DNA of 64,000 nucleotides, taken from the NCBI GenBank assembly GCA_964036045.1, contig OZ038378.1, positions 156,736,001-156,800,000 on the forward strand, written 5' to 3'. How positions within the stretch are numbered: the stretch's first letter is position 1; the number at the start of each line of letters is the position of its first letter. Positions 2,185 through 28,611 of this stretch are shown here, piece after piece. The notes below the pieces were generated by a model that saw only the letters and a list, made by a program, of their open reading frames with translations, ran no database searches and had not been told where the DNA came from. Position numbers and translations under genes: made by a program. The stretch comes from Eutreptiella sp. 'Long Island Sound 2002'. Its lineage: Eukaryota; Protista; Euglenida.

Positions 2185-2266
2185 TCCAAGCTGTGACAGA
2201 AAAAGTAAAAAATCAAAAATGAATTGAAATTGGTCTTGAAATTCAAAATTCGAATTTGTCAGCGAT

Positions 2267-2530
2267 GGTATATACTGTGGTATATAGTGTGGTATTGCAC
2301 ACACTCTTGTTCAGACCCTACCATGAGCAATATTGTTATTGGCTGAGGAGTTGGTGCCTGCATGCTTTGTTGAGCTAGTTATATATTGCGGCGGCGGTGG
2401 TATATATTGTGGTATATACTGCGGTGGCGATGGTATATACTGTGGTATATACTGCGGCGGCGGCTGATATATACCGCGGTACATACTGCGGTATATACTG
2501 GTATACTAGTATATACCGCTCGTATATACC
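2267..2530. repeat. Irregular short-period repeat built on the palindrome GTATATAC (ggtatatactgt/gcggcgg)
   Basis: Many GGTATATACTG-like units at 2267-2297 and 2378-2530. Confidence 0.75.
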
Positions 2531-3469
2531 GGTATTTATGCGAGCGGCAATCATCCCGAAGGGTGTTTTCCTTTGCAGTTGCGCGGGCGACACTTACCTC
2601 CTATTGTATGTTTCTCCCTGCTCTGTTTGAAACTAAACAGCAACTGAAGGGGACAGGCTGAGTGAGTGCCATGCTATGCAGCCCAATCAGTTTGCAAGTA
2701 GTACAATGAATGCAGTCCACACCTTATGGACAACTGCTATTTTATTGATCCTGGTTGTTCTTTAGAGTCGGCAGAAAGGAAAAGCACTCAAGTGACCTGC
2801 AGAGCTAACTGCAAAAAACGCCTCACTGTACTTTACATAGTGGAGCACCCCAACCAAGAAGGGGACACGTGCATTGATTGGACTTCGCAGTACTGCTGGA
2901 CTAATGGCTGGAATTGTCTATGGCGGGGACATTCAGTCTATCGGAACCGACCATTGATCCCCCCTGTACCTGGGTACTGCTTTTTGGGGGGGGGGGGGGG
3001 GGCAGGGTCACTCACTATGTGTCAATCCAGCCCCAGGCCGTGGGCTTTTTTCTCCGGCATGGACCCCCTAACCAATGGCAGGATACTGGGCTCTATCTCT
3101 GGGTACCCCCAGTTGGCCCCTCCATGGCGCTCCACGGGTGAGGAAGTAGCCATGGGGTGGTTGAAAAAATCGCAATTTTCGGGCGACCTCCGACGACCCT
3201 TGGGCCAGCGTTGGGTGATCATTCGGCGACAATGGGAGCACCTACAAACCTTGGGGTGCCAAGTGGCACCAATTAGGCCCTCCTAGTGGTGCTTATCGGC
3301 CCCCAAAAAGCTCCGTTTTGGGTCTGTTTGCACTCGAACATCGCTCGTCTCTCTTTGAGGCGCCTTGCCGAAGGGAATGTAATTTTAAGATTTCAATGTT
3401 GCTCTTGCAAGAGGGGTGGGGTAATGATTGCTATGAGTGTCACTGTTTGGATCCGTTGCTCCAGATCAA

Positions 3470-5578
3470 ATGGCGACAGTTCATCTTGCAATTGGATGCC
3501 TGATGGCATCCCTGATCTTCTGTGCCAGTGTACACGCAGTGGTGTGTGCAATGCTGTTGCACGGCAACAAGATTCTGATGGGCACGTTGTTTGGAATCCA
3601 GAGCCTGGGCTGTGTGGTACTCACTGCGTTCCCTGTTGTGCACTGTCTGATGCATGCACACAGGCCCAGGAGAAGATGGACAGACCCAGAGATCTATCTT
3701 ACTGGAAGATGTTTTTCCCAGCGTCATATCATCCGTACCGACGCCTCTGGTGAAGAATTTGTGCAGCAGGCCCCCGAAACCTCCACTACATCATACGACC
3801 CGACGGGTTGCTGGATGTGGCTCCTGGTTCTATTGGTCGGTGTTGGTGATGTGCTGTGGGCCTTGTGTGGCGTGCGCTCTTGCTGGTTTGTGGTGACACT
3901 AAGTCCGATCCCAGCAGGGGCACGAGCACCGATGGCTGCGCTGGCAGTGGGCGTTATTGTGTCTACTGTGCTGCTCGGCATGGGCCACACAGTGGCCACA
4001 GTCACCTCCCTGGGTCCACAGGTGCTCGTGGAGGTGGGGTGCGTTCCGTTGCCTTGCCTTTTGCTGTTGGCCCAGCTTGCATCTCGTGGGGCAGCACCGC
4101 CGTCGCCAGGCTCCCCGCGATGCAGTCCCTCTCCGTCCGCTTCAGGCAGTGCCCCGCCGTCCCCAAAAGGCCGTCGCCTGGAAGAAGTAAACACGCACGT
4201 GGATGACGTTGGCACGTCTCCTGCACGCTCCTGCGACTGCGACATTCCGAGCAGCAAGCGTACGTCCGACTTCCGTATGCTACGCAAAACCCGGGTGCGG
4301 CAGTCGGCGCACAAGCCACTGCGGTACAGCGTGGCTTCGCAGATTGCCTCAGGAGGGTTTTCGGACGTGTTCCTGGGCCTCAGCCATGACACCGGAGACC
4401 TGATCTGCCTCAAGCAACTGAAAGTCGGATTCGCAGAGTCCGACATGGCATCCATGGAGGCCGAGGTCAGCCTTTTGAAGCAGTTGGCCCATCCCAACAT
4501 CGTGCAGTATTTCGGGACAGACCGACGAGGAGAGCGCTTCACGATCCTCTTGGAGTACGTGCCCGGGGGATCGATCGAGACAGTACTGTCGGAGTTCGGC
4601 GCCCTTGAGGAGGAGGTGGTGCGGCTGTACATGCGACAAGCCGTTTGCGGGCTGGAGTACCTCCATCTCCAGGGCTTTGTACACGGCGACATAAAAGGGG
4701 CCAACATCCTGGTCTCTGACAAGGGAGAGGTGCGGTTGTCCGACTTCGGATGCTCGTACAGCTCTCGCGCTTCCCAGGGCGACTGCCTCGCCATGGGCAC
4801 TGTGCTGTGGATGGCCCCGGAGAAGTGTCGGCAGGAGCGTTCCAACTCCGCATGTGACGTCTGGAGTCTTGGCTGCACCATTTTGCAGATGGCCACCAAC
4901 CAGGAGCCGTGGAGCGAGAGACGATTCGAGCACATCATCTCGGGCTTTTACCACATCGCCACCTGCCAGGAGCCTCCACAAGTGCCCAGCACCATCTGCG
5001 GCCCCATGCGGCACGTGGTGCTGCAGTGCCTCCAGCTGGAGCCATTGCGCCGCCCCTCGTGCACTGACCTGCTGGCAACGGTTTGGCTGGCTACAAATGT
5101 CGATGGGATGGACGGACTGGCGTCCTTGCCCACCCCTGAGACCAGCCCACGGTGGTCGCGCCTGCAGCTAAAGGAACAACCCAAACATCAGAAAGTCAGT
5201 AGTTTCCGAAGTGATTCGTCTGGCAGCCTCCAAAAGCAGTTTTCGGACGTGCCCGGGCAGGTCCCCTCCACCTCATCATTACTTCCAGTAACAACAGCTC
5301 CCATTTTGGAGACGTCCAGTGCGTTTTTTTCAAGCGCATCAATGTCGAGCAACGAGCCAGGGGAATCGCGGGCGCTGCCCTGTGTTGTGCCGGAGAGCGA
5401 AAGCGTCAGTGTGGACGACTTGCGTGGGAGCCTAACGGGCGCCATGTATGGGGACGTGCAGCACACGTTCCGTGGGGATTGCGGTCTGCGGGATGGCATC
5501 TCCTCAAGTCGTTCTGGCAAACTTCCAGGCCCACCCAGCGTCGCCAAGTCCAATCCCTGTTGGCACCCCCGGCCCTAA
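3470..5578 (+). CDS. STE11/MAPKKK (MEKK/NPK1-like) Ser/Thr kinase with N-terminal multi-pass hydrophobic region, intronless, ~702 aa
   Basis: Kinase domain ~4325-5090: IASGGFSDV (G-loop), ICLK, HPNIVQY, LEYVPGGSI, HGDIKGANIL, DFG, GTVLWMAPE, DVWSLGCT. About 5-6 hydrophobic segments upstream. First in-frame ATG at 3470 follows ctccag (possible acceptor); the track start at 3437 is a GTG right after a TGA. Confidence 0.9.
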   Translation: MATVHLAIGCLMASLIFCASVHAVVCAMLLHGNKILMGTLFGIQSLGCVVLTAFPVVHCLMHAHRPRRRWTDPEIYLTGRCFSQRHIIRTDASGEEFVQQAPETSTTSYDPTGCWMWLLVLLVGVGDVLWALCGVRSCWFVVTLSPIPAGARAPMAALAVGVIVSTVLLGMGHTVATVTSLGPQVLVEVGCVPLPCLLLLAQLASRGAAPPSPGSPRCSPSPSASGSAPPSPKGRRLEEVNTHVDDVGTSPARSCDCDIPSSKRTSDFRMLRKTRVRQSAHKPLRYSVASQIASGGFSDVFLGLSHDTGDLICLKQLKVGFAESDMASMEAEVSLLKQLAHPNIVQYFGTDRRGERFTILLEYVPGGSIETVLSEFGALEEEVVRLYMRQAVCGLEYLHLQGFVHGDIKGANILVSDKGEVRLSDFGCSYSSRASQGDCLAMGTVLWMAPEKCRQERSNSACDVWSLGCTILQMATNQEPWSERRFEHIISGFYHIATCQEPPQVPSTICGPMRHVVLQCLQLEPLRRPSCTDLLATVWLATNVDGMDGLASLPTPETSPRWSRLQLKEQPKHQKVSSFRSDSSGSLQKQFSDVPGQVPSTSSLLPVTTAPILETSSAFFSSASMSSNEPGESRALPCVVPESESVSVDDLRGSLTGAMYGDVQHTFRGDCGLRDGISSSRSGKLPGPPSVAKSNPCWHPRP

Positions 5579-6108
5579 AGCCACCAATGGGGTCCCTTGC
5601 ACATGTGCTGCGTGGCGGTCCGTCGGCCCTCAGCCTCTCTGGAAGCAGCCACGCGTCCGTTCCATTGAACCGCAACATATCATCAGATGAAATGTTCTCA
5701 TGTTCAAGGTGGCGGGAGTCCTTTCCCTCTTCGCAGAGTCATGGTCCAGTCAAGTCCGCCGGCCCGGCCTCTGAGGAGGTATTTCCCACCTCACGAACTT
5801 ACTGTCTGCGGGATGGCAAACTTCCAGGCCCACCCAGCGTCGCCAAGTGCGGCCAATCCCTGTTGGCACCTCCGGCCGTAAAGCCACCAATGGGGTCCCT
5901 TGCACATGTGCTGCATGGCGGTCCGTCGGCCCTCAGCCTCTCTGGAAGCAGCCACGCGTCCGTTCCATTGAACCGCAACATATCATCAGATGAAATGTTC
6001 TCATGTTCAAGGTGGCGGGAGTCCTTTCCCTCTTCGCAGAGTCATGGTCCAGTCAAGTCCGCCGGCCCGGCCTCTGAGGAGGTATTTCCCACCTCACGAA
6101 CTTACTGT
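5486..6108 (+). repeat. Tandem duplication (320 bp + 303 bp) in the kinase 3' region
   Basis: Copy 1 is 5486-5805, copy 2 is 5806-6108. They are near-identical except that copy 1 lacks 4 nt (aagt[gcgg]ccaatc) and copy 2 lacks 21 nt. Confidence 0.95.
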
Positions 6109-6240
6109 GCGCCGGTACGCCGCCGCAGTTGGAAGGCCCAGTTCGCTCAGCAGCTGGAGTTCCTGGAAAGCATTGCATTCACTGAAGATCGTGTACGCTC
6201 TCTTCGTGAGGGGAGGGCCAGTCTTAAGGATACTGAATGA
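5549..6240 (+). other. Out-of-frame ancestral C-terminal tail of the kinase (ends ...QQLEFLESIAFTEDRVRSLREGRASLKDTE*)
   Basis: Restoring the 4 nt seen in copy 2 moves the kinase frame into ORF 5479-6240 (GKLPGPPSVAK-CGQSLLAPP...). Confidence 0.7.
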
Positions 6241-6646
6241 TTCTGGTCTTGCACCCAAATGTAACAGGTACCAAAAGACCCGACGACTCACCTTCGCAGC
6301 TTCTCAGGTTCCGTATACTGAGAAAAAAAAGATGATTAATGATTGCTCAGCTCTCGTGATGATTTTAAGGTTGGATTCCCTTTCTGATTCCCTTTCTGAA
6401 GCCTTTGCGGCTTCTACTCTGAAAAGTGCTAATTGGAGACCTTCATCGCATGTTGCTTTGAATGGGCTAGGTATCTTGTGCCTAGGGATGTGTTACCGCC
6501 GTTTCGGAATATTGTTGTGTTCACCAAATGGCGTGTCCAACGAACACTCCTGTTCAGATCGTATCTTTTGACGACAAGATTGTTCATATGCCTGTGACAC
6601 GGGGGTAAATGTGAGCTCTGTATCTGTTGCTTTATGGCCCTTTCCG

Positions 6647-6705
6647 TCCTCCCTCCCTCCCTCCCTCCCTCCCTCCCTCCCTCCCTCCCTCCCTCCCTCC
6701 CTCCC
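6647..6705. repeat. (CCCT)n microsatellite
   Basis: About 14 CCCT units read directly. Confidence 0.95.
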
Positions 6706-6991
6706 AACCCCCCTTGATCAGTACCCACCCAGTGTCGCACCCAGGGACTGGGGGAAGACGTTTGTCACTTTGAGTTTTCCAATTTTAATTAGATGGTTGG
6801 ATATTGGGCTTCTCCTGTGTGTCTATTGTTTGGACAAGGCAGTATTATTGGTGTATTGGTGTGTAATTAATATTTCGTGCATCCAAGTCACTGCACATAC
6901 CCTTTTGCAATTTCAGCAATGAATGTCGATCACATTGTCACAAGTGTTGCCAATTTGCTAATTTCCAACGTTCAGGGGGCAGTGTTGTGCT

Positions 6992-7096
6992 TGTCCCCTG
7001 TGCATGAGCGCACTGGGGCCTTATTGAATTCCTGTCCCCTGTGCATGAGCGCACTGGGGCCTCATTGGATTCCTGGCCCCTGTGCATGAGCGCACT
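6992..7096. repeat. 41-bp minisatellite, ~2.6 copies (tgtcccctgtgcatgagcgcactggggcc...)
   Basis: Units start at 6992, 7033 and 7074. Confidence 0.9.
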
Positions 7097-7971
7097 CAAG
7101 AATCTGGCCCCTCAGCGTGGTGCTGGCTAACAGCTCATCACATATGAGTGCTCTGGTACTGTAGTGATCCCTCCGTGCTTTGAGGCATCGATCAATGCTG
7201 GGGCCCGATGGAATAAACCGTACATGGTCTCGGCATACATTTTGGCTCGGCATACATTCGGCCCGCCTGCCGGCCGGCCGAATGTGCGGCCGTTCCCCTT
7301 TTCTATTGCCTCCCCCACAGGGGCGGAATGCCACTCCCCAGCCCGCCGTAACCCTGCATGTGTTCTTGCTTCCTTCTTAGGGCTCTCCTGTTTGTCACCG
7401 ACCACTCCCCCTAAACTGGAATGGGGACAGCAGTGTTCTCTGCCCCAAGCGAATAGTGGTCAACTGTACCCACCCCGCTTTGCATATCATTTGCGCTTGC
7501 ATAGTTCAGCTGCTTGCTGAGAGCGGTCATGCCCCCCCCTCAGAGAGAAACGCTACACTGCAGGATGTGCCGCGTGCTATTCTGTTGTTACATGTTGAAC
7601 GTTCCACAGTAGCAGGGACGTGAGGACGAAAATGGTCAACTTATCAACCTCCTTATCAAAGCATTGTGGATTTCGCCGCCCACACCTCTTCTCAGGGGAG
7701 CGCCACAGGAAGCAGAAAAGACAAGAGCTGTTGATGTACCTGCCAATGTTTTCCCGTTCTTCTCCCTTGGCCCCTCAGTCTTTGGTCTGAATGGCTGACC
7801 GAAGAGTGCCTAGCAATGCAGGTCACCAAGTTGTACCGGCCCAGCAATGCCATGTTTTGCATTGCCAGAATTGATTTTTTCCTTCCGATTTTTTGTGTTT
7901 TTGCGTGCACAATAGCTAAAACTGAATGCATCCCATGTGGGTCAACACCCACCCACAAGCGATCAGCCCCA

Positions 7972-8241
7972 CGGGATGGATTCTCATCGCCTTGCTCAAG
8001 ACTACACAACTGCGGCACTACATAAACAGGGGCGACAGGCCCCAGCCACACATGCCAACTTGTCCATACGCCCTGACACGCATGCCGAGCCACACAGAAA
8101 CCAGGCCGCCCGGCTTCAGTCTGTGTTCATCGGACAGAGCTGCATTGCTGTGTACTTCAGATGTTTTGCATCCAAGGCACTCCACTGTACCCTGTATCAT
8201 GCAGAACACTTTAGTGCGAACAATGCTGTGGAGAGAAAGAG
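7972..8241 (+). repeat. Left arm of a 270-bp inverted repeat (partner 10392-10661)
   Basis: ORF 7926-8270(+) and ORF 10267-10674(-) share the identical translation GWILIALLKTTQ...MLWRER. Confidence 0.95.
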
Positions 8242-8559
8242 AGAGAGAGAGAGAGTGTGTGTGTGTGTGACGCCCAATCATTTCAACAATCTCAAAGCGT
8301 TTGCTATCATACAACACCTCTCTACAGCAAGAGAGAGAGCTTGCGTGGACAACAACACCATATTATAGAGGAAGGCCTGCATGGGTCTCCGGGTCAGCTG
8401 TCATAGCGAGGGCTCTTCCTGCGTCACTCTCCCTTGCAAAGGGCGAGCTACCGGCGCCCTCCCGCAGTTGGACCCTCACCTAGGCCAGAGAGTGTGTGTG
8501 TGTGAACACTTTTTGGCCCCCCGTAATAGGAGGCAGGAGCGTAACCGTGCCTGAGCATC

Positions 8560-9650
8560 ATGGTACCCTCCCCCCTCTTATGCAACGACTGGCAATGCTC
8601 CTCCCCAAAATGGATTCCCGCATCTGTTCTTCTGCCTTTCCTTGTCCTAAGCGGAGTGAGCAGAGGGCGCAGGGGAGGGCCCAGCCAGCAGAGCAGGGGG
8701 CAGGCAACGCTGGTTTTGAATCAACACATCCCCACCAACAGTGTCACAGCTGCGGGTTCACCGTGGCAACGTCTGTTTGCCATCCCGATGGGAGGATCTT
8801 TCAGCGCACAAGCCGCAGATCTATATTGCATATGGGCTTTTCATTTACTGAAGGCACGTTCACGACAATGGGGTAAACTATCTACCTCTCCGGAGGGCTA
8901 CCCTGTGTGGACATCCAGTACAGGTCGCATCATGGCATTAGCACAATTCCGTGACAATATACTCATAGCATCGGCAGGACCCCGCGCTACATCCGTTGTG
9001 CGCGACGTATGCAACACTCTCACCAACGCATGGAACTACAACATACGGAGTACGCGCAACAACGCGCGTCAAAGCCCTGTGGGCCGCGCGGAGGGTGACT
9101 GCAGGGGAATGGCCACACAGGAGCCCCATGTTGATCCATGCGGCGCAACTCAAAAGCAGTGCACCCCAGGAGTGTATAAAAGGTAAAGCGTTAACCAGGA
9201 CATTGGTATACAGGTTTGCTAGGGCAACATCCTGCACTGCCCAGGCAGATTGCAAAGAGGGTCCTAGTTTCAAATCCCATGGTCAGTGAACGCAGACGGG
9301 TGTGCGATGCATGTACCTATCCCATTTGCCCGGTGCATGCATACTCCGAGGGCACGGAGGTCGGGCGTCATGCAGGCTGCAGTACACTGGTCACCAGGAT
9401 TTTGTATACATGGGCACAGGACCGGCAAGACTCCAGTCGCAAGTGCATTGCATATATTATGCCTCAGATGCCGACCAACAAAGCCACTGTCGCACGTCTG
9501 GTATGTACGTGGCTGCAACGGTCCGCTTTTTGGGATGACTATAAATATGCTTCCTTTCACGCAGACCATCCTGGTGCACATACTGAGTGGTGCGGTGACT
9601 GGAGCACTGATTGGATCGCTTTACAGAGGATAGCAAACCTCCCACCTTCC
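8560..9650 (+). pseudogene. Reverse-transcriptase fragment, Penelope-like (degenerate)
   Basis: AIPMGGSFSAQAADLYC resembles RT motif 4 (GxPMGSxxS). AQFRDNILI sits at the YxDD position (8944-8958). Downstream sequence is frameshifted. Confidence 0.55.
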
Positions 9651-10118
9651 GGTGGGGGGTGAGGGTGAGGGGTGGCTCCAGTCTGAACCATGTCTGTATA
9701 CTTTCTTGTGTATGTAGTAGCTGCAGTTGACATTGATGTTGCCTCCTTCCTACCGCAAATGGTCAACTTTCTCCACAACTCTCACAGACCTTTTGCGAAA
9801 GGTGCCTAGGGCCGGTTTCGGCTCTTGACAAGCTTTTCTCCTCTTCTTGTGGCCTGCATGTGCTGATTTGTTGCTGACGTCGCCTCAACCAACAACACAC
9901 ACATGACAGCTCACACGTCACCATACGGGGGGGGGGGGGGTTATACAGGTTACAATTTCTGTGTCACACATTTCATGCGAATGTTTGTACCCAATTTGTA
10001 TTTGAATGTCATCCCCCTCTCCCTCCCTGTCGCTGATAGTGTATGAAATGCAACCCGCTGATTCGTCTCACCCTTCAATCTTCACACCGCTGTCTTTTTC
10101 AGCCTACCCCCCCCCCCC

Positions 10119-10192
10119 CCTTGCGCATGCACGGCCTTGTCTAAGCACGGGGTGGGCGTTGGACCGCCGTTTGGAGGAAATTTTGGGACCGC
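10119..10192. repeat. ~75-bp repeat next to a C-run; inverted copy at 13885-13956
   Basis: ttgcgcatgcacggccttgtctaagcacggggtgggc...gggaccgc matches the reverse complement of gcggtccc...gcccaccccgtgcttagacaaggctgtgcatgcg. Confidence 0.8.
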
Positions 10193-10391
10193 TGTTTTTG
10201 TGGTCCAGAATGGAGGATTGGGTGTTTGTAGAGCGTTCGTACAAGGAAAGAGGGGCTCATTCATGTCTATGATGGTGCATTCTGTTCATAACAACATTGT
10301 ACTACACATTGGAACCCCATGCTGCTTGTTCTGATGTGATTTTCAGCCCTGGCTAACAATGTTATTCCCGGTCTGGCTGTCACATGTGTCA

Positions 10392-10661
10392 CTCTTTCTC
10401 TCCACAGCATTGTTCGCACTAAAGTGTTCTGCATGATACAGGGTACAGTGGAGTGCCTTGGATGCAAAACATCTGAAGTACACAGCAATGCAGCTCTGTC
10501 CGATGAACACAGACTGAAGCCGGGCGGCCTGGTTTCTGTGTGGCTCGGCATGCGTGTCAGGGCGTATGGACAAGTTGGCATGTGTGGCTGGGGCCTGTCG
10601 CCCCTGTTTATGTAGTGCCGCAGTTGTGTAGTCTTGAGCAAGGCGATGAGAATCCATCCCG
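10392..10661 (-). repeat. Right arm of the 270-bp inverted repeat (partner 7972-8241)
   Basis: Reverse complement of 7972-8241. Confidence 0.95.
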
Positions 10662-10940
10662 GCCACCAAGACATTGTATCAATGTCGGGGAACCTCTATC
10701 AATGCACCATGCTGCTGGCGGCAAGGGATGACCGTCACGATTGATTGTTGCATCCAATGCGCGAACAATGCAGGGCCAGTGGGTACTGTCTCAAAATTAT
10801 GCAATTGCATTCAGATGCAAGGCATTGTGTTTTGCCAGCGAGTGACGGTTTGGTGTGGGATGTCCAGTTGAGGGTTTGGTGCGAGAGGTCCGGTGCTCTG
10901 TGTTGCCACAGGGTGTCAAACATCACTTGCGTGTGGTAGG

Positions 10941-11560
10941 TTTGCCATGCTGCACAACATAGCCCCGGGACTTGGAACGGAGGGAGGGGGTGACGTGCAG
11001 CGCACATGCGCATCAGGATACATGGATGCGGCCAACCGCACGTGCCCTGGCGCACCATGTGCACTGCGCGCACCGCTTGGGCGGCACCCTCATGGTGCTT
11101 TAAATGAAAAATAGGCTGAGGTGGGAAAGGTTGGGAGGGCAGGATCAGGGATAGATGGTGCAGTGCGGGGGGACCATGGAGCGACAACACAAAGCCATAC
11201 ATGGTTGAGTCGTTCGTTGTGTGTGGTGTGTACTCACTGTGTCACACACAGCCACAGCGCTCTGGTGTGGCACACCTGGAGTTCTCCGTGCTGCGACTGT
11301 TGGTGGAGACTGTTGCTGAGGACGCGGGGCTGTCTGGGACTGTATCCCTGTGGTATGAGAGGAGGTCCAGTGACGCTCTGAGGGTGCCACCCGCGCACCG
11401 CGCAGGCTGCGTCATTCAAGTATCCCGGTTTTTATGCCATGCTGCACAACATAGCCCCGGGACTTGGAACGGAGGGAGGGGGTGACGTGCAGCGCACATG
11501 CGCATCAGGGTACATGGATGCGGCCAAACGCACGTGCCCTGGTGCACCATGTGCACCGCG
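10941..11560 (+). repeat. ~130-bp direct duplication (10941-11070 and 11434-11560)
   Basis: gccatgctgcacaacatagccccgggacttggaacggagggagggggtgacgtgcagcgcacatgcgcatcagg... occurs twice. Confidence 0.9.
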
Positions 11561-12344
11561 CAGGCAGCACCCTCTCTAGAAGTCATGGTGTCATGGTGTC
11601 CTCTGCCAGGTCCCGCCCGCTCAGGAGCGGTTGCCTGCAGTCCCGGCCAGGCCAGAGCAGCACATTACCGCAGCAAGTGCAGTGCCCTGCCGCGCAGCGC
11701 ACGCACCCGCGCCCCCCCCCCCCCTGTTCGCTCTCTGCCCAAGGCCACACGGCCCGGGCAGTCCCACACGGGCCCCACGGCTCCAATGACACGGCAGTTC
11801 TTCTCTTTTGCACGGGCACACGCAAAAGTTCTTCAACACGGTTGGGTGTCCATATTCGAACCCAAGTTTCACAGAAACCAAAGTTTGGCACCACTGTCCC
11901 CGCGTTCTGCCGACAGGGATTTGGCCAGCACTCTCGTCGGTCAATGATTTCTGAGTTCACTGAGTGCCGCTCTGTGTGGGGGATGGGAGGAGGGAGGACG
12001 GAGAGCCAAACAGGCAGTGCCCCTTGACACGCATCCCAAGAAACAGTTTCCCAGTTATTTTGTGGATCATATGCCATTGTGTTTAGCTGTGGGAAGGGTT
12101 GGCGCAGTGGGGATGTGCATGGGGTGGAGCATGGTGGGTCCTGGTGCTGGCAGTGCGGTTGGTTGATGCCGTACCAGAAGACGTGGACCGCACGTGGACC
12201 CCAGGCTTGCTGGAATCAGGGTCCATGCTCCTACCCAAAAGGGGAAGATAGCGTGGTGAGCTGGTTCAAGAAAGGGGAATGCACAAATATCCCCAAAATC
12301 AGAACTATGTGGGTTCAAGTGGGCAAACACTCACAACAAATGTG

Positions 12345-12527
12345 TCTATGACCCGAGGTGACTGGCAAATTTGTCACCTTATCTGGCCGCACTGCATTTG
12401 TACCGTCTATGACCCGAGGTGACTGGCAAATTTGTCACCTTATGTGGCCGCACTGCATTTGTACCGTCTATGACCCGAGGTGACTGGCAAATTTGTCACC
12501 TTATGTGGCCGCACTGCATTTGTACCG
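12345..12527. repeat. 61-bp tandem repeat x3 with internal hairpin (aggtgac...gtcacct)
   Basis: Period 61 (gtctat at 12344, 12405, 12466); one mismatch between copies. Confidence 0.95.
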
Positions 12528-14008
12528 AATCAAATTAGGTACCAAATTAATACGGTTCCTACGCCCGCTTGGACAAGGGCGTAGCTTTTGCCACTGATTA
12601 TTCTGAATCCGAATCGTCCTCATTGTTGCCAATATCCAGCCCCTTTATTTTGCCATGCCAAAGTACAGCGGATACAAGTGGCAGGCTCACAACACACTGA
12701 CCTTCAAGACAACACAATGACCCGCAACAAAATTTTGGTGTTGTTGACCAAGTGAAGCCCCCTGAAGGAACTCTGGGCTATTGCGCGTGTGCACAAGGGG
12801 CAGTCAGCACAAAGCGCAGAAAGAAAATGGCTCGTCAGTGGCCTAGAAGACCTGGGATGCAGAGATGCCAGTGGTTGGAACACTGACGGTAGCAAAGCAG
12901 TGACAACGCAGCGGTAAGCCCAAACCACCGCCATGCAGTGGCCACCAGACTTGTCTATCAATTAACCAATGAGCTCACATATACAGGAAATGCTGGCGAC
13001 CCCTCCCCCGCGGTCCAAGCCCTGACGCGATGGGAGTAAGCGGGCCCAAAAGTGGCGTCAGGGACATAGCACCAGTCGCGTATCTTTTACAAGGCGGGGG
13101 GTGTGACCGAATTAAAAAACAGACAAGTGCAAACCAGAGGTAATGCACTCGACAGTCAGTTTTACAAGGTGGCCGCACGCAGATCAAAGAGCGCTGCACG
13201 TCCTGGTATGCATATGCAGCAATGTTTTATAAGGTGGGGGGGGGGGGGTACTTGTACACCTTCAGAGGAGGGAATCCTCATGTGGCAAACCCCAACAGCC
13301 AGGGAAAATTATTTTCACCAGGTGAGAGTGGGGTAGTTGTAGTTGTCCTTGTGCTCAAGGGTGCTCACTACCACTGATGTGGGACATGTAACAGGGACCA
13401 ATCAATTCAACCAGTGCGGAAATGAAACACTCTTGGGGCTGCACACAAGTCAAAAAGCGTTCCACACATGTATGTCCTGGTATGCACAACACCCTTAGGG
13501 CGTTCAAAGGTCAGGTGTGGACCCGCCACAGTGCTCCAGCTGCACCTGCCTTCACACGGCCTTCATTGCCAACTCAGTGCGATTCATGTTCGACTGGCCA
13601 TTGCAAGGCCCATTGGCCCATTGTTCTTTTTTTTTTTCCGGTGCTGACCAAGATGAGCTGGCGTGGCCCACTCACTTCACAGTACTCGAGATGACCTCTC
13701 GGAATCAAGGTAGAGAGCTGTCCAGTGCTACCATGATCCCACATTGGCTGTGATCTGACACGCAGTGAGGATTAGCTGAGTCTGAAACCAGGTAATGTAG
13801 TGGGAGGCTGCCACGCCCGTAGGCTTCCCAGTGTGCATGAGACACAATGACTGTACCCCCCCCTCCCCTTGCGCAAGCACGGCCGCGGTCCCAGAAGTCA
13901 GGCCAAAACGGCGGTTCAATGCCCACCCCGTGCTTAGACAAGGCTGTGCATGCGAGAGAGCGTGTGTGTGTGTGTGTGTGTGTGTGTGACGCCCAATCAT
14001 TTCAACAA

Positions 14009-16395
14009 GCGCTGATGGGAAGCCCGGCCCGCCCACCCGCGACAAGACCCGGCGGGATAGTGGTAGTTACTGTTAGTCACTTCCATGTCACATGCCCATG
14101 TCACATACCAGGGTTTTTTTGTGTGTGTTTTTAATAGGAGGGGCATGGATATAGTTGAATTGCATAATTATGGCTCATTTCTTTAGTCAAAATAACAATC
14201 AAAATAGACCAAAGAATGCATACTTCATAGCTCTTGTTCATTGTGTTACAGAGTGTGTTACATCACACTTTTGGTCCATACACTTTTTTTGGTACACATT
14301 ATATTATTCAGCCGAAAAAGAAAATGACGAAAATGAAAAAGAGCAACTATCATCACCACATGCTACTACACGCGCCCAAAACAATAGTTTCCGCGATCCA
14401 TCATGAGAACAATACAACCTAAGCATAATATACATTGCAGCAAAAATTTACCCATTTGCAAAATGGGTATGCAATGCAATGCAAATGCAAATGCAGTTAG
14501 AAAGACATAAAAAAAAAAAGAAAGAATCCATGGCATTAGCTTTGTGACTAGGCTTGGGAAGGACTCGCTATGCTCCTCCTTCCCAAGCCTAGAAAGCCGA
14601 AAGTATCAGAAATTCTGGTACGTACCAACAAGTACACATTTCATTGAGCTGATTTTGACCGAAAATCATGACTAAAAACCTGATTTTTGCGGAAATTGGT
14701 CACAAGCTAGACTATGATCATTCCTCGAATTCTATTACGATATGTCTTCACCTTTCAAAGGAGCCAAACGGTTCGTTCCAACTCAACAATATGTTCGAGA
14801 ACGAAGTCCGACAAATGGAAGCATAAACTGTGAATTGCTACTTTGGACAAAAATGCAAAACCCCCAACGCTTATAAATCCGGGCCAACGGGGCTTCAATG
14901 GGCAAACAATTGACCTTTTGCATTCTTCTAGATCCAAATAACTCCATTATGCTTGGTTGAGGGCTTGGTAACATATGTGCTTCCTACTTGACTACGTGCC
15001 GACAGGTACACATTTTGCCGTGGCAGGGTACGCACAAGATACAACTGATTTTTGTCAAAAAGGACCACCAAAGATGCAATTTTTGCGTGAAATGGGTGTG
15101 AGACGGCCTGTGGCGGGTCCTATTATCCTTTTAGGACATGTTCTCAGCTTTCAAACGAGCCCAACACTTTGTTCTAACTCCACGGTATGTTGGAGAACGA
15201 CCTCCGACAAATGGACCCACAAACCGAAAATGTCCATTTTTGACCAAAATGCCAAACCCCCGGCTTCTATATCTAGGGGTCTTTGGGGGTACACCAGGCA
15301 AACTAGTAGCCATTCCCCTCCCTCTAGGTCCAAACTACTCAAATATGCTTGGTTGAAGTCGCACAAAAGCATGGGCATGCAACCGGAACACCGGGGGGGG
15401 AGACCCATGATTTTGGTAGGCTGGTGTTGTGACAGCACCCAAAAACACAGCTTAAAAAGCACATATCTTTGAGTTTTCGCCCCCATGTGCTCTCTATAGA
15501 GGCCATAGGGACGTAACATTGCTTATACCCGTTCCATCGGACCCATACGGGACTAGTTTGCACAAAGGTTCAATCCCTAGGCCGGGATATAGCGCTTTGA
15601 CAAGGCTGTACAATGGAGACAGCAACCTTCCCTAAGTACTGTTTTTTCTACCGTTTGTACCCTCTTTCTAGGCATCAAGAGGAGGCTGGAGTGGTCAACC
15701 TTGGGGATTTTCACATCATTTGGGTGCAAATGAACTTGGATTGTCACTTGGGTCGTTGCTAGACCCTCGTGGTTTCGCTACAATAGGCCTACGAAACAGG
15801 CCAAAATGGCCAAACTGAGCCTACTGTATAAAAACTTGAAAAAATCATATCTTTGGCCTACCGGCTCGAATTTTGATAAACCGAAAGCCAAATCTGGGTA
15901 GTTTTTGACGCTGAACACGAATATTCAGTCAAAACCTCGGCGTCGAACACGCTGCTGGTGGAAATCGACGATCGGTGTTCCGAAACAGTGATTCGTGCAG
16001 TTTTGCGAAACACCGATTTTACAGCATTATCCGGGCTTTAAAACCCTTCACATTCATGGGCTTAAATCGAATTTTCGTCAACTCTAGCTAGGTGCTGAGT
16101 TCAACAGGAGAAATGTCGGCGACAGCCATTGGTCACGCGTGCGCGCTGATTTTTGACCAGAAATCCGGATTCTGGCCAGTAAAAAAAAAGTCCCCTATAC
16201 AGGCTTGTAGGGGCTGTCCTGCCATCCACAAATATGCCTTTGGTTTGTCCGAAACCTCGTCCGTTGCCATCATTACGGCAGGGCCAATCTCTAAACATAA
16301 TCATCGGGGTCAGCTTTACAGCTGAGCGTCGCAGGCGGCCGCGGAGCCCCTCCCCCGCGGCAAGACAGCGAACGGCGGGCCTTGCGGCCCCAGGG
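14009..16395. mobile_element. ~2.4-kb insertion between CAACAA direct repeats inside the hAT transposase remnant
   Basis: The left flank gtgacgcccaatcatttcaacaa (to 14008) and right flank caacaatctcaaagcgtttgctatcatacaac (from 16396) are contiguous in the uninterrupted copy at ~8266-8316. Confidence 0.7.
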
Positions 16396-18250
16396 CAACA
16401 ATCTCAAAGCGTTTGCTATCATACAACCTGCTGGTGGCATCACCATCCTTGTTGATGAAACGAGTGACAGTGTGGCTGATAATGAACCAGTCAACATACT
16501 CATCATTACTTCTGTTGCAGCATACTACTGCGACACCATTTTTGTGCAGCACAGTAAAGAAGATGAAACAAAATACGGTGATGCTTTTGGGAATGCTGTT
16601 GTTGATTGGTGGGACAGCTGGATCTGCCCATACGAGGACCCAAATCCAAGCCATTGCGTTACTCCGTGCGAGCCTTTGTCACTGACAATGTCAATTATAA
16701 TATTAGTGCATTTAGAAGACGTTGGTCACCCAAATTTCCAAATGCCACACATTTCCGCTGCATTGCCCATGTGTTGAACCTGGTGGGGGCAGTCTTCCGG
16801 GAGCACAAGTGTATGCAATTGTTGCGGGACTATATGGCCAAAGCCCAATCTGTGCTGAAGGGGGGAGAAAACCTCAAGCGACCTCAACGACTCAGAAAAC
16901 AGTTGAGGCAACCGGGTGCAGTACAGGAGGTTGAGGGATGCAGTACCCCCCCTGATTGGGCTGACACTCGGTGGTCTGGGTGGTACCCCCCCCCCCCTTG
17001 CAAAGTCCCCCCCCTTGCAATCTCCCCCCCCCCCCCCCCGGGAGACCGTCACTTCCATGTTTTTCTAGTTAACATGTATTGTGCTGGTTTGTGTTGCCCA
17101 TCTGCTTTACGCATGGCCTTGCATTGCTTTCCCAGTACTACAAATCAAGCACCTGTGTATGTTCTGTGATATTCTCTCTCCAAAGGCGTTGTATGGGTGT
17201 GTTGAGTTGCCACTTCAGACCCAAGATGTTTTCTCCCGGTGACCATGTACGGTACCACACACACACACACTGTCATGCAAACCGAGCATGTGCAACAATT
17301 CAAAGTGTGTTATTCTCGTACCCAGAAGTTCTTTACCGTTCCTTTGGATCCTCAATAACATTTGTGTTGGATGAAACACATTGGCACCGCATCAACGCGA
17401 AAGTCGCTTCACACGTGTTCTCTTTGCTTGCGTCAGTGGAGGGTACCACAGTTTGCCTTGAGATACCTTTGCAATCCCCCCCCCCCCCCGGGGGACCGTC
17501 ACTTGGTGACCGTCTCCCCCCCCCACCCGGGAGACCGTCGCGCGCTACCCCGGGACTTTGCAAGGGGGGCGGGGGGTATGAGTGTTCCACCTGGCACTGC
17601 AGACATTGTACAGATTTCAAAACCTGGCTGGAGGTTGAGGCCCATGCTGCAGATGCCCCAGCCACTATGAAAAACTTGCCTCAGTGGCTCACAGCGCATT
17701 CTTCGTTGGTGCGGTTGCAGCTCATTTTTGTTGTGGAGCATGCGAAAGAAGTGTTTGAGCTTTGACCGTGTCCAAGTGTCGACATCTGCCACCCTCCTGC
17801 ATGGTAACCCGCAAAATAGGCTCAAACCACAGATGCATCGTGTGCATAACAGAATGTTTGCATTGTATACCACGCTGCAGGAATTGGTGAATAAGAACGC
17901 ACTGCGCAACCTTACCAATGCGCGCTTGCATGGGAAAAGGCTCGGAAACTCAGCACCGGAGAAACCCCTCAAAAACCACTGAAAAAGGCTTTTGACCCAC
18001 TCCATCTTTTTCCCAACTCCTGCCCCAACTCCTGCCCCAACCCCTGCCCCCCGACACACGCAAAAACGAGGCACCAGGCACGGCACACCTGCAGCAGCGC
18101 GCCCCGTCACTGCTACCGCCGTCCGCCGGGCGGCGCATGTCCTCCTCATATTCCTCTTCCGCTTGCCTGCGGAAGAGGAATCGAACTCGGGTCTTCACGG
18201 CTGCAACCGGCTGCACAGCCGCTACAGCACGCCGCCAGAAACCTTCCTGC
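16396..18250 (+). pseudogene. hAT-superfamily transposase pseudogene
   Basis: ITILVDETSD (first catalytic D, ~16454), VRAFVTDNV (second D, 16681), FRCIAHVLNLV (CxxH), DTRWSGW (TRW). A possible SSSAC dimerisation-domain remnant at ~18152. Frameshifts at ~16635 and ~17762, plus a MITE insertion. Confidence 0.85.
16986..17576. mobile_element. 591-bp MITE with C-run/G-run TIRs (CCCCCCTTGCAAAGTCCC) and TA TSD
   Basis: Left end ta|ccccccccccccttgcaaagtccc; right end gggactttgcaaggggggcgggggg|ta. Removing it with one TA restores ...TRWSGWY-ECSTW in frame. Confidence 0.85.
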
Positions 18251-23251: not shown

Positions 23252-23600
23252 GTCATAGCAGAGGGAGAGGAGTTCTTGTTGGAGAACCTGTGTTTCCCCA
23301 GAGTTCTTGACCTGGATTTCCCACCCAAGCAGGTGGATGCCCGCGGCAGTGCGGAAGTCTGCTCGTCATAGCAGAGGGAGAGGAGTTCTTGTTGGAGAAC
23401 CTGTATTTCCCAGGAGTTCTTGACCTGGATTTCCCACCCAGGCAGGTGGATGCCCGCGGCAATGCGGAAGTGTGCTCGTCATAGCAGAGGGAGAGGAGTT
23501 CTTGTTGGAGAACTTGTACATACCTTGGAGTTGGAGAACTTGCATTCCCTAGGAGTTCTTGTTGGAGAACCTGTACATCAACCCCAGGCCGCTGCAGCCC
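23252..23600. repeat. ~113-bp imperfect tandem repeat (~2.5 copies)
   Basis: gtcatagcagagggagaggagttcttgttggagaac starts at 23252, 23365 and 23478. Confidence 0.85.
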
Positions 23601-24632
23601 GCAGCGGCGTGGATGCCTGCAGTATTGCGGATGCAGTAGTACGGATGCCTGTTCTGGGCACTGTGCATGACGTTGGGAGGGGAGTTGGCTCCTGGACATC
23701 TTCCCCAATGTGCATTGGGCCCGAGTGTGACCGGGCATGGGGCTCCCCTGTACATCTTCCCCCACCCTTTGAAGTTTTACCCTTCGGAAGGGGAGTGAGC
23801 CCGAGTGCGACCGGGCGTGGGGTCCCCCGGCAGCGGAGTATGGATGGTGCAAACAGGACAAGGCGGACCGCGCACACCACAAATGGCGCAGAACGCAGAA
23901 GGGAATCGCGTATCACAGGCGTAGCTCCCAGGTAGGCCTCGGTGAAGGAAGGCCTTGTAGAGTGTGAGGGCCTACCACAGCTCCGTTGCACTACATCTTG
24001 GGGGTACAAACCTGACATCCTAAGGTGCCGGCCTGCACCCGGGATAGGTAGTTTCACTGGTGCAAAAAAATGACCACAAACCCCTAATAGTTCAGTATAT
24101 TTCTGAAGACAATAGTTTTTGACCCTGCTGTTTTTTGAAATCGAATTTTTAGGCGCCAACGGGCCAAGGTTTCACTGTCAACAGTGAAACTCGAGGTGAA
24201 AGGCCACATTATATGCCACTTTGGGCCGTATCCAACCCCTCCCACCTGTCTACAACCCCCCCCCCCTTGGGTGTTGGTGGTGGTTCATTTGGGTGTGATG
24301 GAGTATGCATGGACCCAAGTGAGGTTAACAGTGCAAGGTAGTTTCACTGTCAACAGTGAAACTACCTGTCCTGCAAGGTAGTTTCACTGTCAACAGTGAA
24401 ACTACTTTGCACTGGAACAATTGTGCTGATACCTCAAGGTCCCGGTGGAGTACCTGTCTTACTGACCGGGCTAGGAATATGGTGTTTCACCACTTGGTCA
24501 CCAATATCCTACCAAACATGTCAAAAAAATAGCAGTTTGGTAGTGTTAGATGAGTTACCCTTCTCAACGGGGCACTTGCCGTGCCTAGTGGGTGACCACG
24601 TGGTGGTGCGATATGCCACCTGGTGGCTAGGC

Positions 24633-24711
24633 TGGGGACGTAGCGGGATTCGAACCTAGCCCCCCACTGGGACGAGACGAGGTGGTTATCTACTGGACCA
24701 CACGACGGTCC
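24633..24711 (-). ncRNA. tRNA-like/SINE-head relic
   Basis: The - strand has an A-box-like tggtccagtag, a B-box ggttcgaatcc, ggac...gtcc acceptor-like pairing and a 3' CCA. T and anticodon stems are imperfect. Confidence 0.35.
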
Positions 24712-25865
24712 GGTGATATTTCCGGTTCCGTTTTTTACAGCCTTTTTCAAAAAAATATTTCCTTTTACTCGTTTTTCCTGCTTATCCATTAACACCACAG
24801 TATGGGAAACAGTTTCACTGTTAACAGTGAAACTGTTTGAGGCCTCTTACTCACTTACTTTGTCATCTCATCCACCCAGGCCACGTTATCACACGTAGTT
24901 TCAGTGTCAACAGTGAATCTACTTTTGGTCATCAAGTACATATGGTAAGTTCCTGCAGCTATGTGCCCTTGTGCTTCCTTGTGCTTGTGCCGTGGTGGGG
25001 GGACAGCGGGGTACCAGAGGAGGATGTTATTGCAGTTGTACCCCCCCATTGTGCCACCATTCCATGTGTTGTTCTCTTGCCTTTCAGGTGGTTGGCCTGC
25101 ACAGCACCGAAGCACTGAGACTTTCACTGTCAACAGTGAAACCAACTGCCACCACTCCCTGTTAGGAACATGCTGTGTTCAAGCTCTTCCGCGGCATGCT
25201 ACTCGCAAAGCCGATGATAGTGGCAAAAACGGTCCCCAATGCAAGGGCTATGACAACACTAACCAAGGAACAGCGGCTTGAGTTGCGGGGAAGTGGTTTT
25301 GTACTCTTGCGGGAACCACCATTGGCCAACCGGGTTGCCTTTGCAAAAGAGAGGATCCGCCAAGAAATGACACAAGGATTATGTGACATGGGCACACCAA
25401 TTTTGCAAGAGCCTCCATTTTTTAGCAGCCTGCGGGGAGCAAGGAGGTGCCAGAAGTGGGAGAAAAGCAGCCCCAAACAGTACCAAATTGCATGCCCCAG
25501 GCACCTCTTCTAATGGGGTTTCACTGTCAACAGTGAAAGTGTGCTGCAGGCGATTCGGTTCAAAGGACCATTTGCCTTTGGTTGTCACTGGAGCATTAGT
25601 TTTAGTACTTCACTATCACGCAAGATGCTGGGTTCAGCTTATTTTGCCTGTTTTCAATTTGCTGAATATGTTGTTGAACACAAGACACAAGGCAACTATC
25701 AGTTCTTAAAACTAACATTGTGTCAACTGGTGCTGCAACATAATGCTTCCTGCTCCTCATTTACTTGTAGTGGTTCCTTCTGCCAAGGGATGCACAATAA
25801 AGACTGAAATTAATTGTGCACTATTCTTTATGGCCGAACCCTACCATGAATCATATCATGCTAGC

Positions 25866-26475
25866 CCTTTTTGAATGTGCGGTACATGGACGGACACACA
25901 TACAACAGGCAGGAGGAATCAAAGAGAATGGTGTGAAGGCTGATGCATGAACACAGGCAAGGAAGCTAGCATCAGAAGTTCCTTGACACCCTGTTCCCTG
26001 GCACCAGCATTCCAAAAAACTAGACTCTCCGAGGAGGTTTCACTGTTGACAGTGAAACTGTCTGCCCAGAAGCTACCTCATCCCGTGCTGTCGATTCTGT
26101 GGTTCATGTGCCCCCAACTGTCCTCAAACCTACCTTCAATGCCGTTAGTGTCGATGCAAAACCAGCTCCCGCGAAGGCAACAAGGAACAAGAAGGGGAAG
26201 GCCAAGCCCCTTGCCAAGGCAGGTGCCAAGCGGCCGACTGAGCAAACCACCCTCACCCAGATGGACCTAGAGAATACCGTGGATTTACACAGCATTGACA
26301 AGGGCCAGTAGCAAGCAATTGCAGCGCAGCTTTAGGACGCAAACAACGTGGGATCCGGCGGACGAGGAGCCCCCGGGTTGAAGCGGAAACCCAAAGTCCC
26401 TGCCGTGACCATCCCCAGTGTGGCTCAGCTTGAGCAAGCTTCCCGGAGGACCCGCAAGTGCAAAGCAGTAGGCTG
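25866..26475 (+). pseudogene. Degenerate ORF inside the TIR element, reading in frame through palindrome 8
   Basis: NVRYMDGHTYNRQEESKRMV*RLMHEHRQGS*HQKFLDTLFPGTSIPKN*TLRGG-FTVDSET-VCPE...KATRNKKGKAKPLAK...GQ*QAIAAQL*DANN...RKCKAVG*. One frame with 5 internal stops; family unknown. Confidence 0.45.
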
Positions 26476-27570
26476 AATGGGAGGACCTGTCAGTTGTGCT
26501 TTTTTGAGAACTGCTTCTGGTTGTACTGTTGCTGCCCTAACAATGTCTGCTGGTTTGCTGGGTTATCACACCGTACTTTCACTGTCAACTGTGAAACACA
26601 CATAATGACACCTGTGCCCGAAATGCTTGAAACCGGTGTTAGATTTTTTCCTGTCACTGCACTGCTCTGTGATGACCTACTACACACAGTTTGGTCCGGA
26701 AGTCCACTATGTGCTTTTGTTTTTCAACAGACAGGAACAATCATTTATGAACCATAAACCGTACCCTTCAGCCTCTGTCTTGGACTGCACGGACATATGA
26801 CACTGTCCCTGTGTATTTGCACTGTACTTCACTGCAGGAGCCACGTACTGTTTATCTTCTATGTCAGTTTCACCAATAGGGTCATATATCTGCTGTATTG
26901 TTTCCACGTTGCACCTCGGAGTGCAGTATACAACTCTGTTTCACTGTTAACAATGAAACTCTCTCCCTTACTGATGTCATTTGCCAGTGACAGTATTTTT
27001 CATTACGGATATGCTTCTACAAATGCAGGTACACTGTGTGCACAAGTGTCCTACCTGTGTTTTGTGTTGCTCCTTTACATACACTCGTTTGTCTCACATG
27101 GGATGCAATGGAGGGGGGGGGGGGTTCTGGGGACGCCGTCCATCACACCTCAATGCTTCTATGTCACTTGCTGTTTCACTGTTGACAGTGAAACATTATG
27201 AAATATGGCCCCCACAGTGCGGTTTTGGGAAATTGAATTTTTATGTGAGTTTCACTGTTGGACACACAGGCCAACAGTGAAACTTTTTGTCCGTTTTCGG
27301 GGTCCCCGTCGGCCCGGGATGTCAGGTTCGTACCCCCAAGTACATTGCCAGGGTGGCCTGCAGTGGACAGTTGAGCTTGGGCCGGTAGTTCTTAGATCAC
27401 GTTCTGATCTATGGTTTAGCTCTGTTTGTGGTGTGCGTGTGTGAGTGTGTGTGGTATGCATGCGTGTGTTTTTATCGTAGTGCAATTTTTGCATTTGAGC
27501 CTGCAGACCAGACGAGGGTCACACGTAGAGTCAAACTCCGTGATCATTGGTATAGACCCGGCTAGCAGTA

Positions 27571-28611
27571 ATGTCGATGTCAGATTTCGCGGCATTTGCC
27601 AGGGGCAGTATTTGCTCCACCTTTATCGATTCGGTGCCCCTCATCGAAATTGCGAGGGCCACGTCGACAGTTGAAATGGCACTGTCGGTGTTGATGGAGA
27701 GGAGAAAGGAGTGGGAGGACACATTTACCAAAAAGTTTGGGGTGCCGGTGGATGGAGAGGTAGGGCTACCAAAAATGATAGGAGCGTTCTGTGTGATGGC
27801 GCAGTGCAACCTTGATGTGGAAGGGGTGGGTTTCGTGAAGACGGCACCACCCCCGGCCCCAACGCCTGAGCTGCAGGAGTTGAAGAAGCTGGTGGAAGAC
27901 TAGCGTATGGCCATGGAGGGGCTGAGAAAAGAGTTGGCGGAGGTCGGCGCGAAATCCCAGGCCGCAGCGAAGAGGAAGATGGCAGGGGTACCCCCTTTGA
28001 GCAAGGCAGAGCTGCTGAAGGTCCGGGAGCTGGACGCCAAGCCCCAATGGGTATATGCAAGCCTACTGGCTTTGTCCACGCTACTGTGGCGCAGAGAGGT
28101 GCCGGCCCACAAATGCGTGTCGCGCTTCCGGGATAAGGATGTCACTTTGGATGTCACTTTGGATGATCTGGCCCCAGTGATGAATTCTGATGCCGCTTAC
28201 ACCAAGGTTTGGTGTCTGGAGTCCATGGATGACAAGGAGATCGACAGGCTGAAAGCCTTCGTCCTGGCGGTGTGGACGTTTACGGCAACGTCCTTGTCTG
28301 TGTATAGAGGTAAATGGGGTCTTGACCCCAAAGGGGCGGTTGATCAGCGAGAGACGGAAGACGACGAGCCCAGTCTGCCGGCGAGATCGCAAGGCTGTAC
28401 AGGAGCCGCGGAGGAAGAGGTGGTGGCGCGAAGGCTGGCGGCCATGAAGGCGAAGTTCAAGGTCGAGGGAGACCGCAGGCTGTACACGACAAAGCCTGGG
28501 GCAGAACCAATGGATGTGACGTGCGCGCCAGTGACAGCGTGCCGGGCTTGCAAGAATGCGGGGAGAGGCATGAAACACCACTGGTTTCATGAATGCCCGG
28601 GGTTTGACTAA
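27571..28611 (+). pseudogene. Gag-like ORF of the YR retroelement (one in-frame TAG at 27901)
   Basis: ORFs 27571-27903 and 27907-28611 are in the same frame. The C-terminal CRACKNAGRGMKHHWFHEC is zinc-knuckle-like. Confidence 0.7.

Follow-up and report, generated by a model that had tools for sequence, protein, structure and literature searches.

Palindromes along a Eutreptiella element and its full-length relatives: candidate cis-acting sites of a two-gene DNA transposon family

What kind of element carries the same palindrome again and again along its body, between stretches of DNA that look unrelated to one another? This question is raised by a 64-kb stretch of the euglenid Eutreptiella sp. 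'Long Island Sound 2002' (contig OZ038378.1, positions 156,736,001 to 156,800,000; hereafter the window, the whole 64,000 nucleotides, with positions counted from its first letter). The window contains a 3.3-kb element, 23997-27340, which is bounded by terminal inverted repeats (TIRs) and a target-site duplication and is crossed by copies of a 22-bp palindrome. An earlier note on this DNA had offered two readings, either a cassette-capture system in which a recombinase or transposase adds pieces of DNA at the palindrome, or a transposon family with binding sites for a protein distributed over its entire length. The latter fits all of the evidence, with the binding itself being what we infer. 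We consider it likely that the element is a deletion copy of a transposon of about 8.4 kb and that the palindrome is a fixed, selectively maintained cis-acting site of this family for an element-encoded protein.

The TIRs are 24 bp long and identical at 23 of 24 positions, with a single A/G difference, and the TIR pattern occurs in the window only at the two ends of the element (0 expected in shuffles). Each end is flanked by a perfect copy of the 5-bp duplication TACAT. Both features had been described in the earlier note, and both hold by pattern matching and by contigs that carry the empty site. The 22-mer, allowing up to two mismatches, has 11 matches in the window, all within the element, against 0 expected in 100 shuffles; this bears out the statement that the motif is absent from the rest of the 64 kb. 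It is the two-fold form of a 10-bp half-site, GTTTCACTGT. The earlier count of 12 copies stands for 11 intact palindromes, and the twelfth is a split site at 27249-27283. Start-to-start spacing is 40-539 bp, practically the irregular 40-540 bp that had been given, and the sequence between the palindromes is non-repeating as claimed, except for one 40-bp duplication (24332-24371 / 24372-24411). A palindrome scan of the whole window revealed no other recurrent palindrome. No Pfam match was obtained for the window's own open reading frames (ORFs), and the element encodes nothing functional, being a dead non-autonomous copy.

We mapped onto the region the contigs of four public runs, which derive from two organisms and an estuary metagenome. 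In each deep run about 1500 contigs align to the window element, at 85-100% identity, and at least 29 carry a different continuation beyond 27340. Some contigs join 23991 straight to 27341, skipping 3349 bases, which correspond to the element and one TACAT; these are paralogous empty sites. Many copies with different flanks, together with the empty sites, show that the family is mobile.

A 112-codon ORF of the element (25175-25513) retrieved ORF products from an independent genome assembly in ENA, and the contigs that encode them were fetched, giving full and partial copies of the family in 160 kb of sequence. Four of these copies are complete (Table 1), share the TIRs of the window element and are each flanked by their own distinct, perfect 5-bp duplication. 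The short sister copy L005 was assembled independently and is colinear with the window element at 94-97% identity, therefore the structure seen in the window is not an assembly artefact. The window copy differs from L005 by one extra deletion of 410 bp. Longer copies, for which the earlier note had suggested a search, were found at about 8.4 kb; they encode a transposase of the Asp-Asp-Glu (DDE) class, whose conserved motifs they retain, and no recombinase domain was found in them. Placed on the long copy L009, the window element consists, in order, of the left end, codons 2-76 of the first long ORF piece in the transposase gene, a deletion at 25413, a piece from between the two genes, about 275 bp (25647-25921) not assigned to the family's genes or intergenic DNA, the last 172 codons of gene 2 and the right end. 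The deletion point at 25413 coincides exactly with the point at which long-form contigs diverge from the window, and L009 likewise has other sequence from there on. With TIRs and duplication length in common with a longer coding element, a colinear subset of its sequence and no intact genes, the window element is, as judged from these alignments, a non-autonomous internal-deletion derivative of a high-copy, two-gene cut-and-paste DNA transposon of about 8.4 kb.

The first gene of the long copies encodes the transposase. Its 472-codon ORF in L004 has 406 homologues in a library of 1.8 billion proteins, many of them 650-820 amino acids long and about 30% identical, and none of the full-length homologues reaches a Pfam family. 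An alignment of 41 homologues contains invariant columns at D76, D213, E414/415 and W248-H249. We used AlphaFold to model one homologue, P0013, which was predicted with a mean predicted local distance difference test (pLDDT) of 80 and a predicted template modelling (pTM) score of 0.80. Compared with solved structures, this model was most similar to 6p5a, 4d1q, 6pqn and 3jbw, the P element, Hermes, Transib and RAG1 enzymes, with a probability of up to 1.0, E-values of only about 1e-3 and TM-scores of 0.2-0.4. Its best matches in AlphaFold-DB are DUF6589 proteins (E 1e-8 to 1e-5), and the language-model neighbours of the transposase are also DUF6589. The best score against Pfam DUF6589 (PF20231) is 20.3 bits (E 2.5e-4), below the gathering threshold of 27 bits; the transposase is thus a distant relative of DUF6589 and not a member by the Pfam rule. 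The fold match to solved transposases, together with an acidic triad that has a long helical insertion before its last Glu, places the protein in the DDE class. On the modelled structure, gene 1 is a DDE transposase with a ribonuclease H fold and a large helical insertion domain, as in the P-element, hAT and Transib/RAG1 enzymes, and with DUF6589 as its nearest named group. No Pfam match to the Plavaka, KDZ or Sola transposase domains was obtained with the family's genes. The combination of a DUF6589-like DDE enzyme, CTTGG termini and 5-bp duplications apparently defines a lineage without a name. The earlier note had recognized this combination of TIR, duplication and site in no described superfamily, which holds so far, given a transposase with no Pfam match above threshold.

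We then compared the palindromes across the copies. They occupy the same positions and have the same centre dinucleotide in every recovered copy. L009 carries 17 palindromes, neighbouring sites being no more than about 1.3 kb from each other; they are located in subterminal DNA, between the genes and in every intron of gene 2. The transposase coding sequence contains one, which specifies SFTVDSET, part of a surface loop modelled at low confidence that aligns without gaps to the homologues, and another lies in frame in exon 4 of gene 2, in a disordered part. Between the short-form lineage and the long copies, the palindrome arms are 93-97% identical and all other sequence is 75% identical (Fisher p 4e-7 to 7e-12). 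The arms were conserved while the rest diverged, therefore the sites have been kept by selection, including in the lineage that lacks genes, and this pattern in the alignments points to a requirement in cis. In the 160 kb of fetched loci the 22-mer is found only within copies of the family, and its exact form has two single, unrelated occurrences in the metagenome collection.

The ends of the element carry the same motif in a simpler form. All copies have one solo half-site near each end, 55 bp in on the left and 58 bp in on the right, both facing inwards. The sole other match to a solo half-site has one mismatch, lies in the transposase coding sequence of three long copies and is probably due to chance. 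The palindrome looks like two end-type sites placed head to head. The centres of 94 sites are CA in 44, TG in 42, TA in 7 and CG in 0, and the orientations are mixed in the best full copy (8 CA, 9 TG), such that polarity relative to the ends is not a feature of the family. CpG is depleted (observed/expected 0.44-0.71) and TG/CA is in excess (1.3-1.5) throughout the window and the fetched loci, which marks this genome as subject to methylation-driven CpG decay. The pyrimidine-purine centre is thus explained by decay of the central CpG of a once-perfect palindrome, and no oriented crossover core is needed.

More distant relatives of the transposase are also accompanied by palindromes. L134, from another metagenome, spans 700-8257, encodes a transposase about 32% identical to that of the window family, has 23-bp TIRs that start with CTTGG and carries a second gene on the opposite strand; no matching 5-bp duplication was seen at its ends. 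Its palindrome, TTCGTAAC-N-GTTACGAA, is present about 17 times: tandem arrays with a period of 24-29 bp flank the transposase gene left and right, and one copy lies within the gene. In L012, three copies of AGTAGTCGTC..GACGACTACT surround the transposase gene, and in L011 one perfect 24-bp palindrome lies just after it. The palindromes of L134, L012 and L011 are all different, therefore private palindromes travel with the transposase lineage.

Based on these observations, we propose that a sequence-specific protein encoded by the element would bind the half-site at each end and, as a dimer, the internal palindromes. Binding would help to find, pair or mark the element's own DNA, and deleted copies would keep the sites because they are needed in cis for movement by proteins supplied in trans. 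As the binder, the second protein is quite possible, the N-terminal region of the transposase may also serve, if somewhat less plausibly, and a different protein seems rather unlikely.

Gene 2 of L009 consists of four ORF pieces, modelled as exons 9445-9895, 9987-10405, 10462-10768 and 10879-12524, and three GT-AG introns of matching phases, which together give one open frame of 940 codons, and each of the three introns contains one palindrome. Word-based protein searches with the gene 2 pieces returned only copies of the same family, a feature-based search of the ESM Atlas gave no match, and gene 2 showed no oxygenase or methyltransferase domain. A JGI contig considered as a possible transcript was rejected, since it is unspliced genomic DNA. 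By eye, the residues around the junction of exons 1 and 2 follow the pattern of ParB and sulfiredoxin, and this candidate domain spans an intron. The comparison set comprised 42 ParB proteins of bacteria, encoded at loci that had been retrieved by searching with the parS sequence. The hhalign comparison of gene 2 with this set was in the expected register and not significant (P 0.19), and a joint profile of gene 2 and the L134 accessory protein gave P 0.05, again in the expected register. The best match of the L134 accessory ORF among PDB sequences is sulfiredoxin, at a non-significant E of 0.34. The motif K[YF]GQxR ... L.GQH..A.VK is common to gene 2 and the L134 accessory ORF, at places that correspond to the boxes of the ParB N-domain. 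These alignments suggest, below significance, that gene 2 contains a ParB/sulfiredoxin-like domain, which we regard as likely but unproven.

The half-site provides a lead in the same direction. The half-sites of the canonical bacterial parS, TGTTTCACGTGAAACA, equal the outer 7 bases of the palindrome arms (GTTTCAC / GTGAAAC), although the arms are 8 bp further apart than in the 16-bp parS-type palindrome. The chance of such a match is roughly 1 in 4000 per family, and it was noticed after the fact. We consider rather doubtful, and raise as a speculation, that the second protein is a ParB/sulfiredoxin-derived binder that still reads parS-type half-sites (GTTTCAC), loads at about 17 palindromes and the end half-sites and bridges, condenses or marks the transposon DNA. 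Such a centromere-like self-recognition module, needed in cis, would explain why the sites are kept under selection in copies without genes.

Several observations weigh against a selectively maintained site read by a dedicated second protein. The conservation test defines the sites in one sequence of each pair, which favours sites near the consensus. When very recent dead copies are compared, the palindromes show no significant excess of conservation over their flanks, which is expected after death and adds no support. Neither Pfam, NCBIfam, PHROGs nor PDB sequences yielded a significant match for the gene 2 protein, and AlphaFold modelled its largest ORF at a pLDDT of 32, which is unreliable. 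Finally, the second genes of the window family and L134 have no BLAST similarity, thus the transposase, the only protein clearly shared, could be the binder.

Of the other explanations for the palindromes, the one that survives best, and to which we give little credence, is that they act as RNA hairpins that aid intron splicing or the production of small RNAs. The presence of exactly one palindrome in each of the three introns of gene 2 speaks for this role, as do weak matches to hairpin-type microRNA models at the duplicated site (24341..24402). These matches are far below the Rfam gathering scores, and we rejected a microRNA identity for the duplicated palindrome, the relaxed Rfam matches being hairpin artefacts. 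Moreover, most sites are outside introns, in subterminal, intergenic and coding DNA and as end half-sites at a fixed distance, which suits end recognition at the level of DNA rather than splicing.

Rearrangements among the copies bear on a further explanation, in which the palindromes would be crossover sites of a site-specific recombinase, encoded by gene 2, that inverts and deletes segments to give the short forms and the inversions. Three segments vary in orientation among six copies. Short and long forms carry the left segment 24413-24937, with its two palindromes and tRNA-like stretch, in opposite orientations. The left junction of this segment abuts palindrome 3 at a fold-back extension, in which the 12 bases to the left of the site are repeated as a reverse complement on the right; such a junction resembles the product of a template switch at the palindrome. 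A 230-bp segment just upstream of the gene 2 start codon, with a palindrome near its centre (window 25412-25646; L009 about 9218-9451; L007 about 12812-13045), is oriented one way in L004, L009 and L010 and the opposite way in L007, L005 and the window copy, a distribution unrelated to how similar the copies are overall. It is flanked only by an imperfect 8-bp inverted repeat and may represent either a control region that can invert or a rearrangement that has recurred. In L004, a 1.9-kb inverted block breaks gene 2. The asymmetric centre dinucleotide (CA/TG) would also suit a crossover site, and a stretch of gene 2 resembles a recombinase core-binding motif in a reading made by eye only. However, none of the breakpoints of inversions and deletions coincides with a palindrome centre; their distances from the palindromes range from 11 to more than 100 bp, which argues against site-specific recombination at these sites. 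No tyrosine or serine recombinase match was obtained in Pfam, NCBIfam, PHROGs or PDB sequences, and the centre counts given above fit decay of a central CpG. We therefore regard a recombinase acting at the palindromes as very improbable.

Cassette capture, either integron-like or Pack-like, was raised by segments between palindromes that look mutually unrelated and can draw on contig joints in which one side ends at a palindrome. The short side of such joints is only 21-33 letters, however, and is the palindrome itself mapping ambiguously to another copy. Contigs at 88-90% identity traverse palindromes 7, 8, 9 and 10 with both sides unchanged, and palindrome 1 is likewise traversed by a contig with 8 differences in 296 bases. 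The alignment of copies that had been suggested gave no integron-like differences in the number, order or identity of segments; the copies are colinear, with the same sites and centres and no breakpoints at the centres. Nor do the segments trace to unlinked host loci in the Pack-type manner, since those that can be identified are left over from the family itself, from its transposase gene, its gene 2 and its intergenic DNA. With no recombinase domain in the window element or the full copies, cassette capture can hardly be correct. That the palindromes are tiny independent mobile insertions, like miniature inverted-repeat transposable elements or introners, is as good as dismissed, because identical short palindromes at many places are its one attraction and they have no target duplications around them, have flanks that sometimes extend the palindrome and occur nowhere in the other 60 kb of the window and only within family copies in the fetched loci.

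Some further features of the element and its surroundings were recorded alongside those in Table 1. The flanks of the window element, 23578-23996 and 27341-27640, are themselves repeated at high copy number (their summed contig depth is in the thousands, and paralogous empty sites occur), therefore the element is nested in another repeat. All copies contain, in their left non-coding region, a tRNA-like stretch with a T-arm-like GGTTCGAATCC (window 24620-24700, minus strand; L007 about 9300-9470). ARAGORN did not call it a tRNA in any copy; across the window, no tRNA was predicted and no Rfam family reached its gathering score. A tRNA-Ser (TGA) is predicted at 14787-14858 of L004, within a 500-bp insertion specific to this copy, which may be a tRNA-derived short interspersed nuclear element. 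About 670 bp of family sequence (8183-8850) precedes the left TIR of L004; in L010 (4236-5476) the left 1.2 kb is inverted, and further family fragments lie beside complete copies. This adjacency suggests self-insertion or local rearrangement.

Table 1. Features of the window element and coordinates of the complete family copies (positions in the window, or in the named locus for the family copies).
Feature	Position	Strand	Length	Remarks
Left target-site duplication TACAT	23992..23996	.		Empty-site contigs join 23991 to 27341, with 5 shared letters
Left 24-bp TIR, starts CTTGG	23997..24020	+		Same TIR bounds the L004, L005, L007 and L009 copies
Solo half-site GTTTCACTGG, position 55 from left end, inward-facing	24051..24060	+		In all five complete copies
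Palindrome 1, centre CA	24169..24190	.		Orthologous site in L005
Palindromes 2 and 3	24341-24362, 24381-24402	.		From the 40-bp duplication; jointly an extended palindrome with 39-nt arms
Left non-coding segment with palindromes 4 (24812, TA) and 5 (24898, CA)	24413..24937	.		Inverted relative to long copies
Palindrome 6	25121..25142	.		22-mer match
Transposase-gene remnant, codons 2-76 of first long ORF piece	25196..25418	+		tblastn; deletion cut at about 25413
Intergenic remnant (just upstream of gene 2 in long copies), with palindrome 7 (25518)	25412..25646	.		Mapping to long copies
Gene 2 remnant, last 172 codons, Lys/Ala-rich tail, with palindrome 8 (26037, TG)	25949..26464	+		Stops at 26309-26311 and 26333-26335
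Right non-coding region with palindromes 9 (26576), 10 (26938, TA) and 11 (27173, TG)	26576..27194	.		Orthologous in L004
Split palindrome, half-sites 27249-27258 and 27274-27283, 15 bp apart	27249..27283	.		Inner-facing half 58 bp from right end; kept in all copies
Right TIR	27317..27340	-		TIR match
Right target-site duplication TACAT	27341..27345	.		Empty-site contigs
L009 copy	5069-13437		8369 bp	Target duplication ACCAA
L007 copy	8705-17075		8371 bp	Target duplication ACCTG
L004 copy	8851-17703		8853 bp	Target duplication ATGGC
L005 copy, short sister	8425-12210		3786 bp	Target duplication AGAAT

Comparison of the window family with described systems indicates which of its properties are shared. 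In retaining the TIRs and duplication length of an autonomous form, in being a colinear, gene-deleted subset present in many copies at different sites and in presumably being moved in trans, the window element resembles Ds of Ac and dSpm of En/Spm. It differs from them in its transposase lineage and in its sites, which are long palindromes over the whole body rather than short subterminal motifs only. In En/Spm (CACTA) elements the protein TNPA, and in the P element the THAP domain of the transposase, binds repeated sites inside the TIRs at both ends. These are the closest functional parallels to the half-site found 55-58 bp inside each end of the window family, and the P-element enzyme is also the closest solved structure. 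Yet the duplication is 5 bp in the window family, compared with 3 bp for CACTA and 8 bp for P, and the sites are 22-bp palindromes that are also located in introns, intergenic DNA and coding DNA far from the ends. Transib and RAG1 share with the family a 5-bp target duplication and a related overall fold, whereas the window TIR starts with CTTGGGGG and not with the CACNNTG heptamer, the Foldseek E-value of 0.03 is weak and there is no relationship at the level of sequence.

Two groups of algal transposons and one bacterial system are relevant to the second gene. Plavaka elements of the red alga Bostrychia carry the accessory gene PAG3, with a ParB-like domain and a 2-oxoglutarate (2OG) oxygenase, as well as inverted-repeat arrays, and the authors of the 2025 study propose that the accessory protein binds its own element (bioRxiv 10.1101/2025.02.11.637652). 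Sola1 of Ectocarpus carries a ParB-methyltransferase gene (PMC12477816). The window family is likewise a eukaryotic DNA transposon with an accessory gene and inverted repeats, but its transposase is not Plavaka, KDZ or Sola, its sites are dispersed and not in a tandem array beside the accessory gene, and the ParB-likeness of gene 2 is unproven. The ParB-parS system also has many sites per replicon-like unit; unlike it, the window family has no ParA partner and resides in a eukaryotic host, and gene 2 resembles ParB only below significance (hhalign P 0.05-0.19; sulfiredoxin E 0.34 for L134).

The family is of interest since each branch of its lineage carries its own long palindrome throughout the element, even in introns and coding sequence. 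To this we add sites under selection in copies without genes, a half-site at a fixed distance from both ends and the identity of this half-site, over 7 bases, with that of bacterial parS. If a ParB-derived protein does read the sites, a bacterial DNA-segregation module would have been reused for self-recognition by a eukaryotic transposon, and the private pairs of palindrome and protein could then serve as orthogonal DNA-tagging tools.

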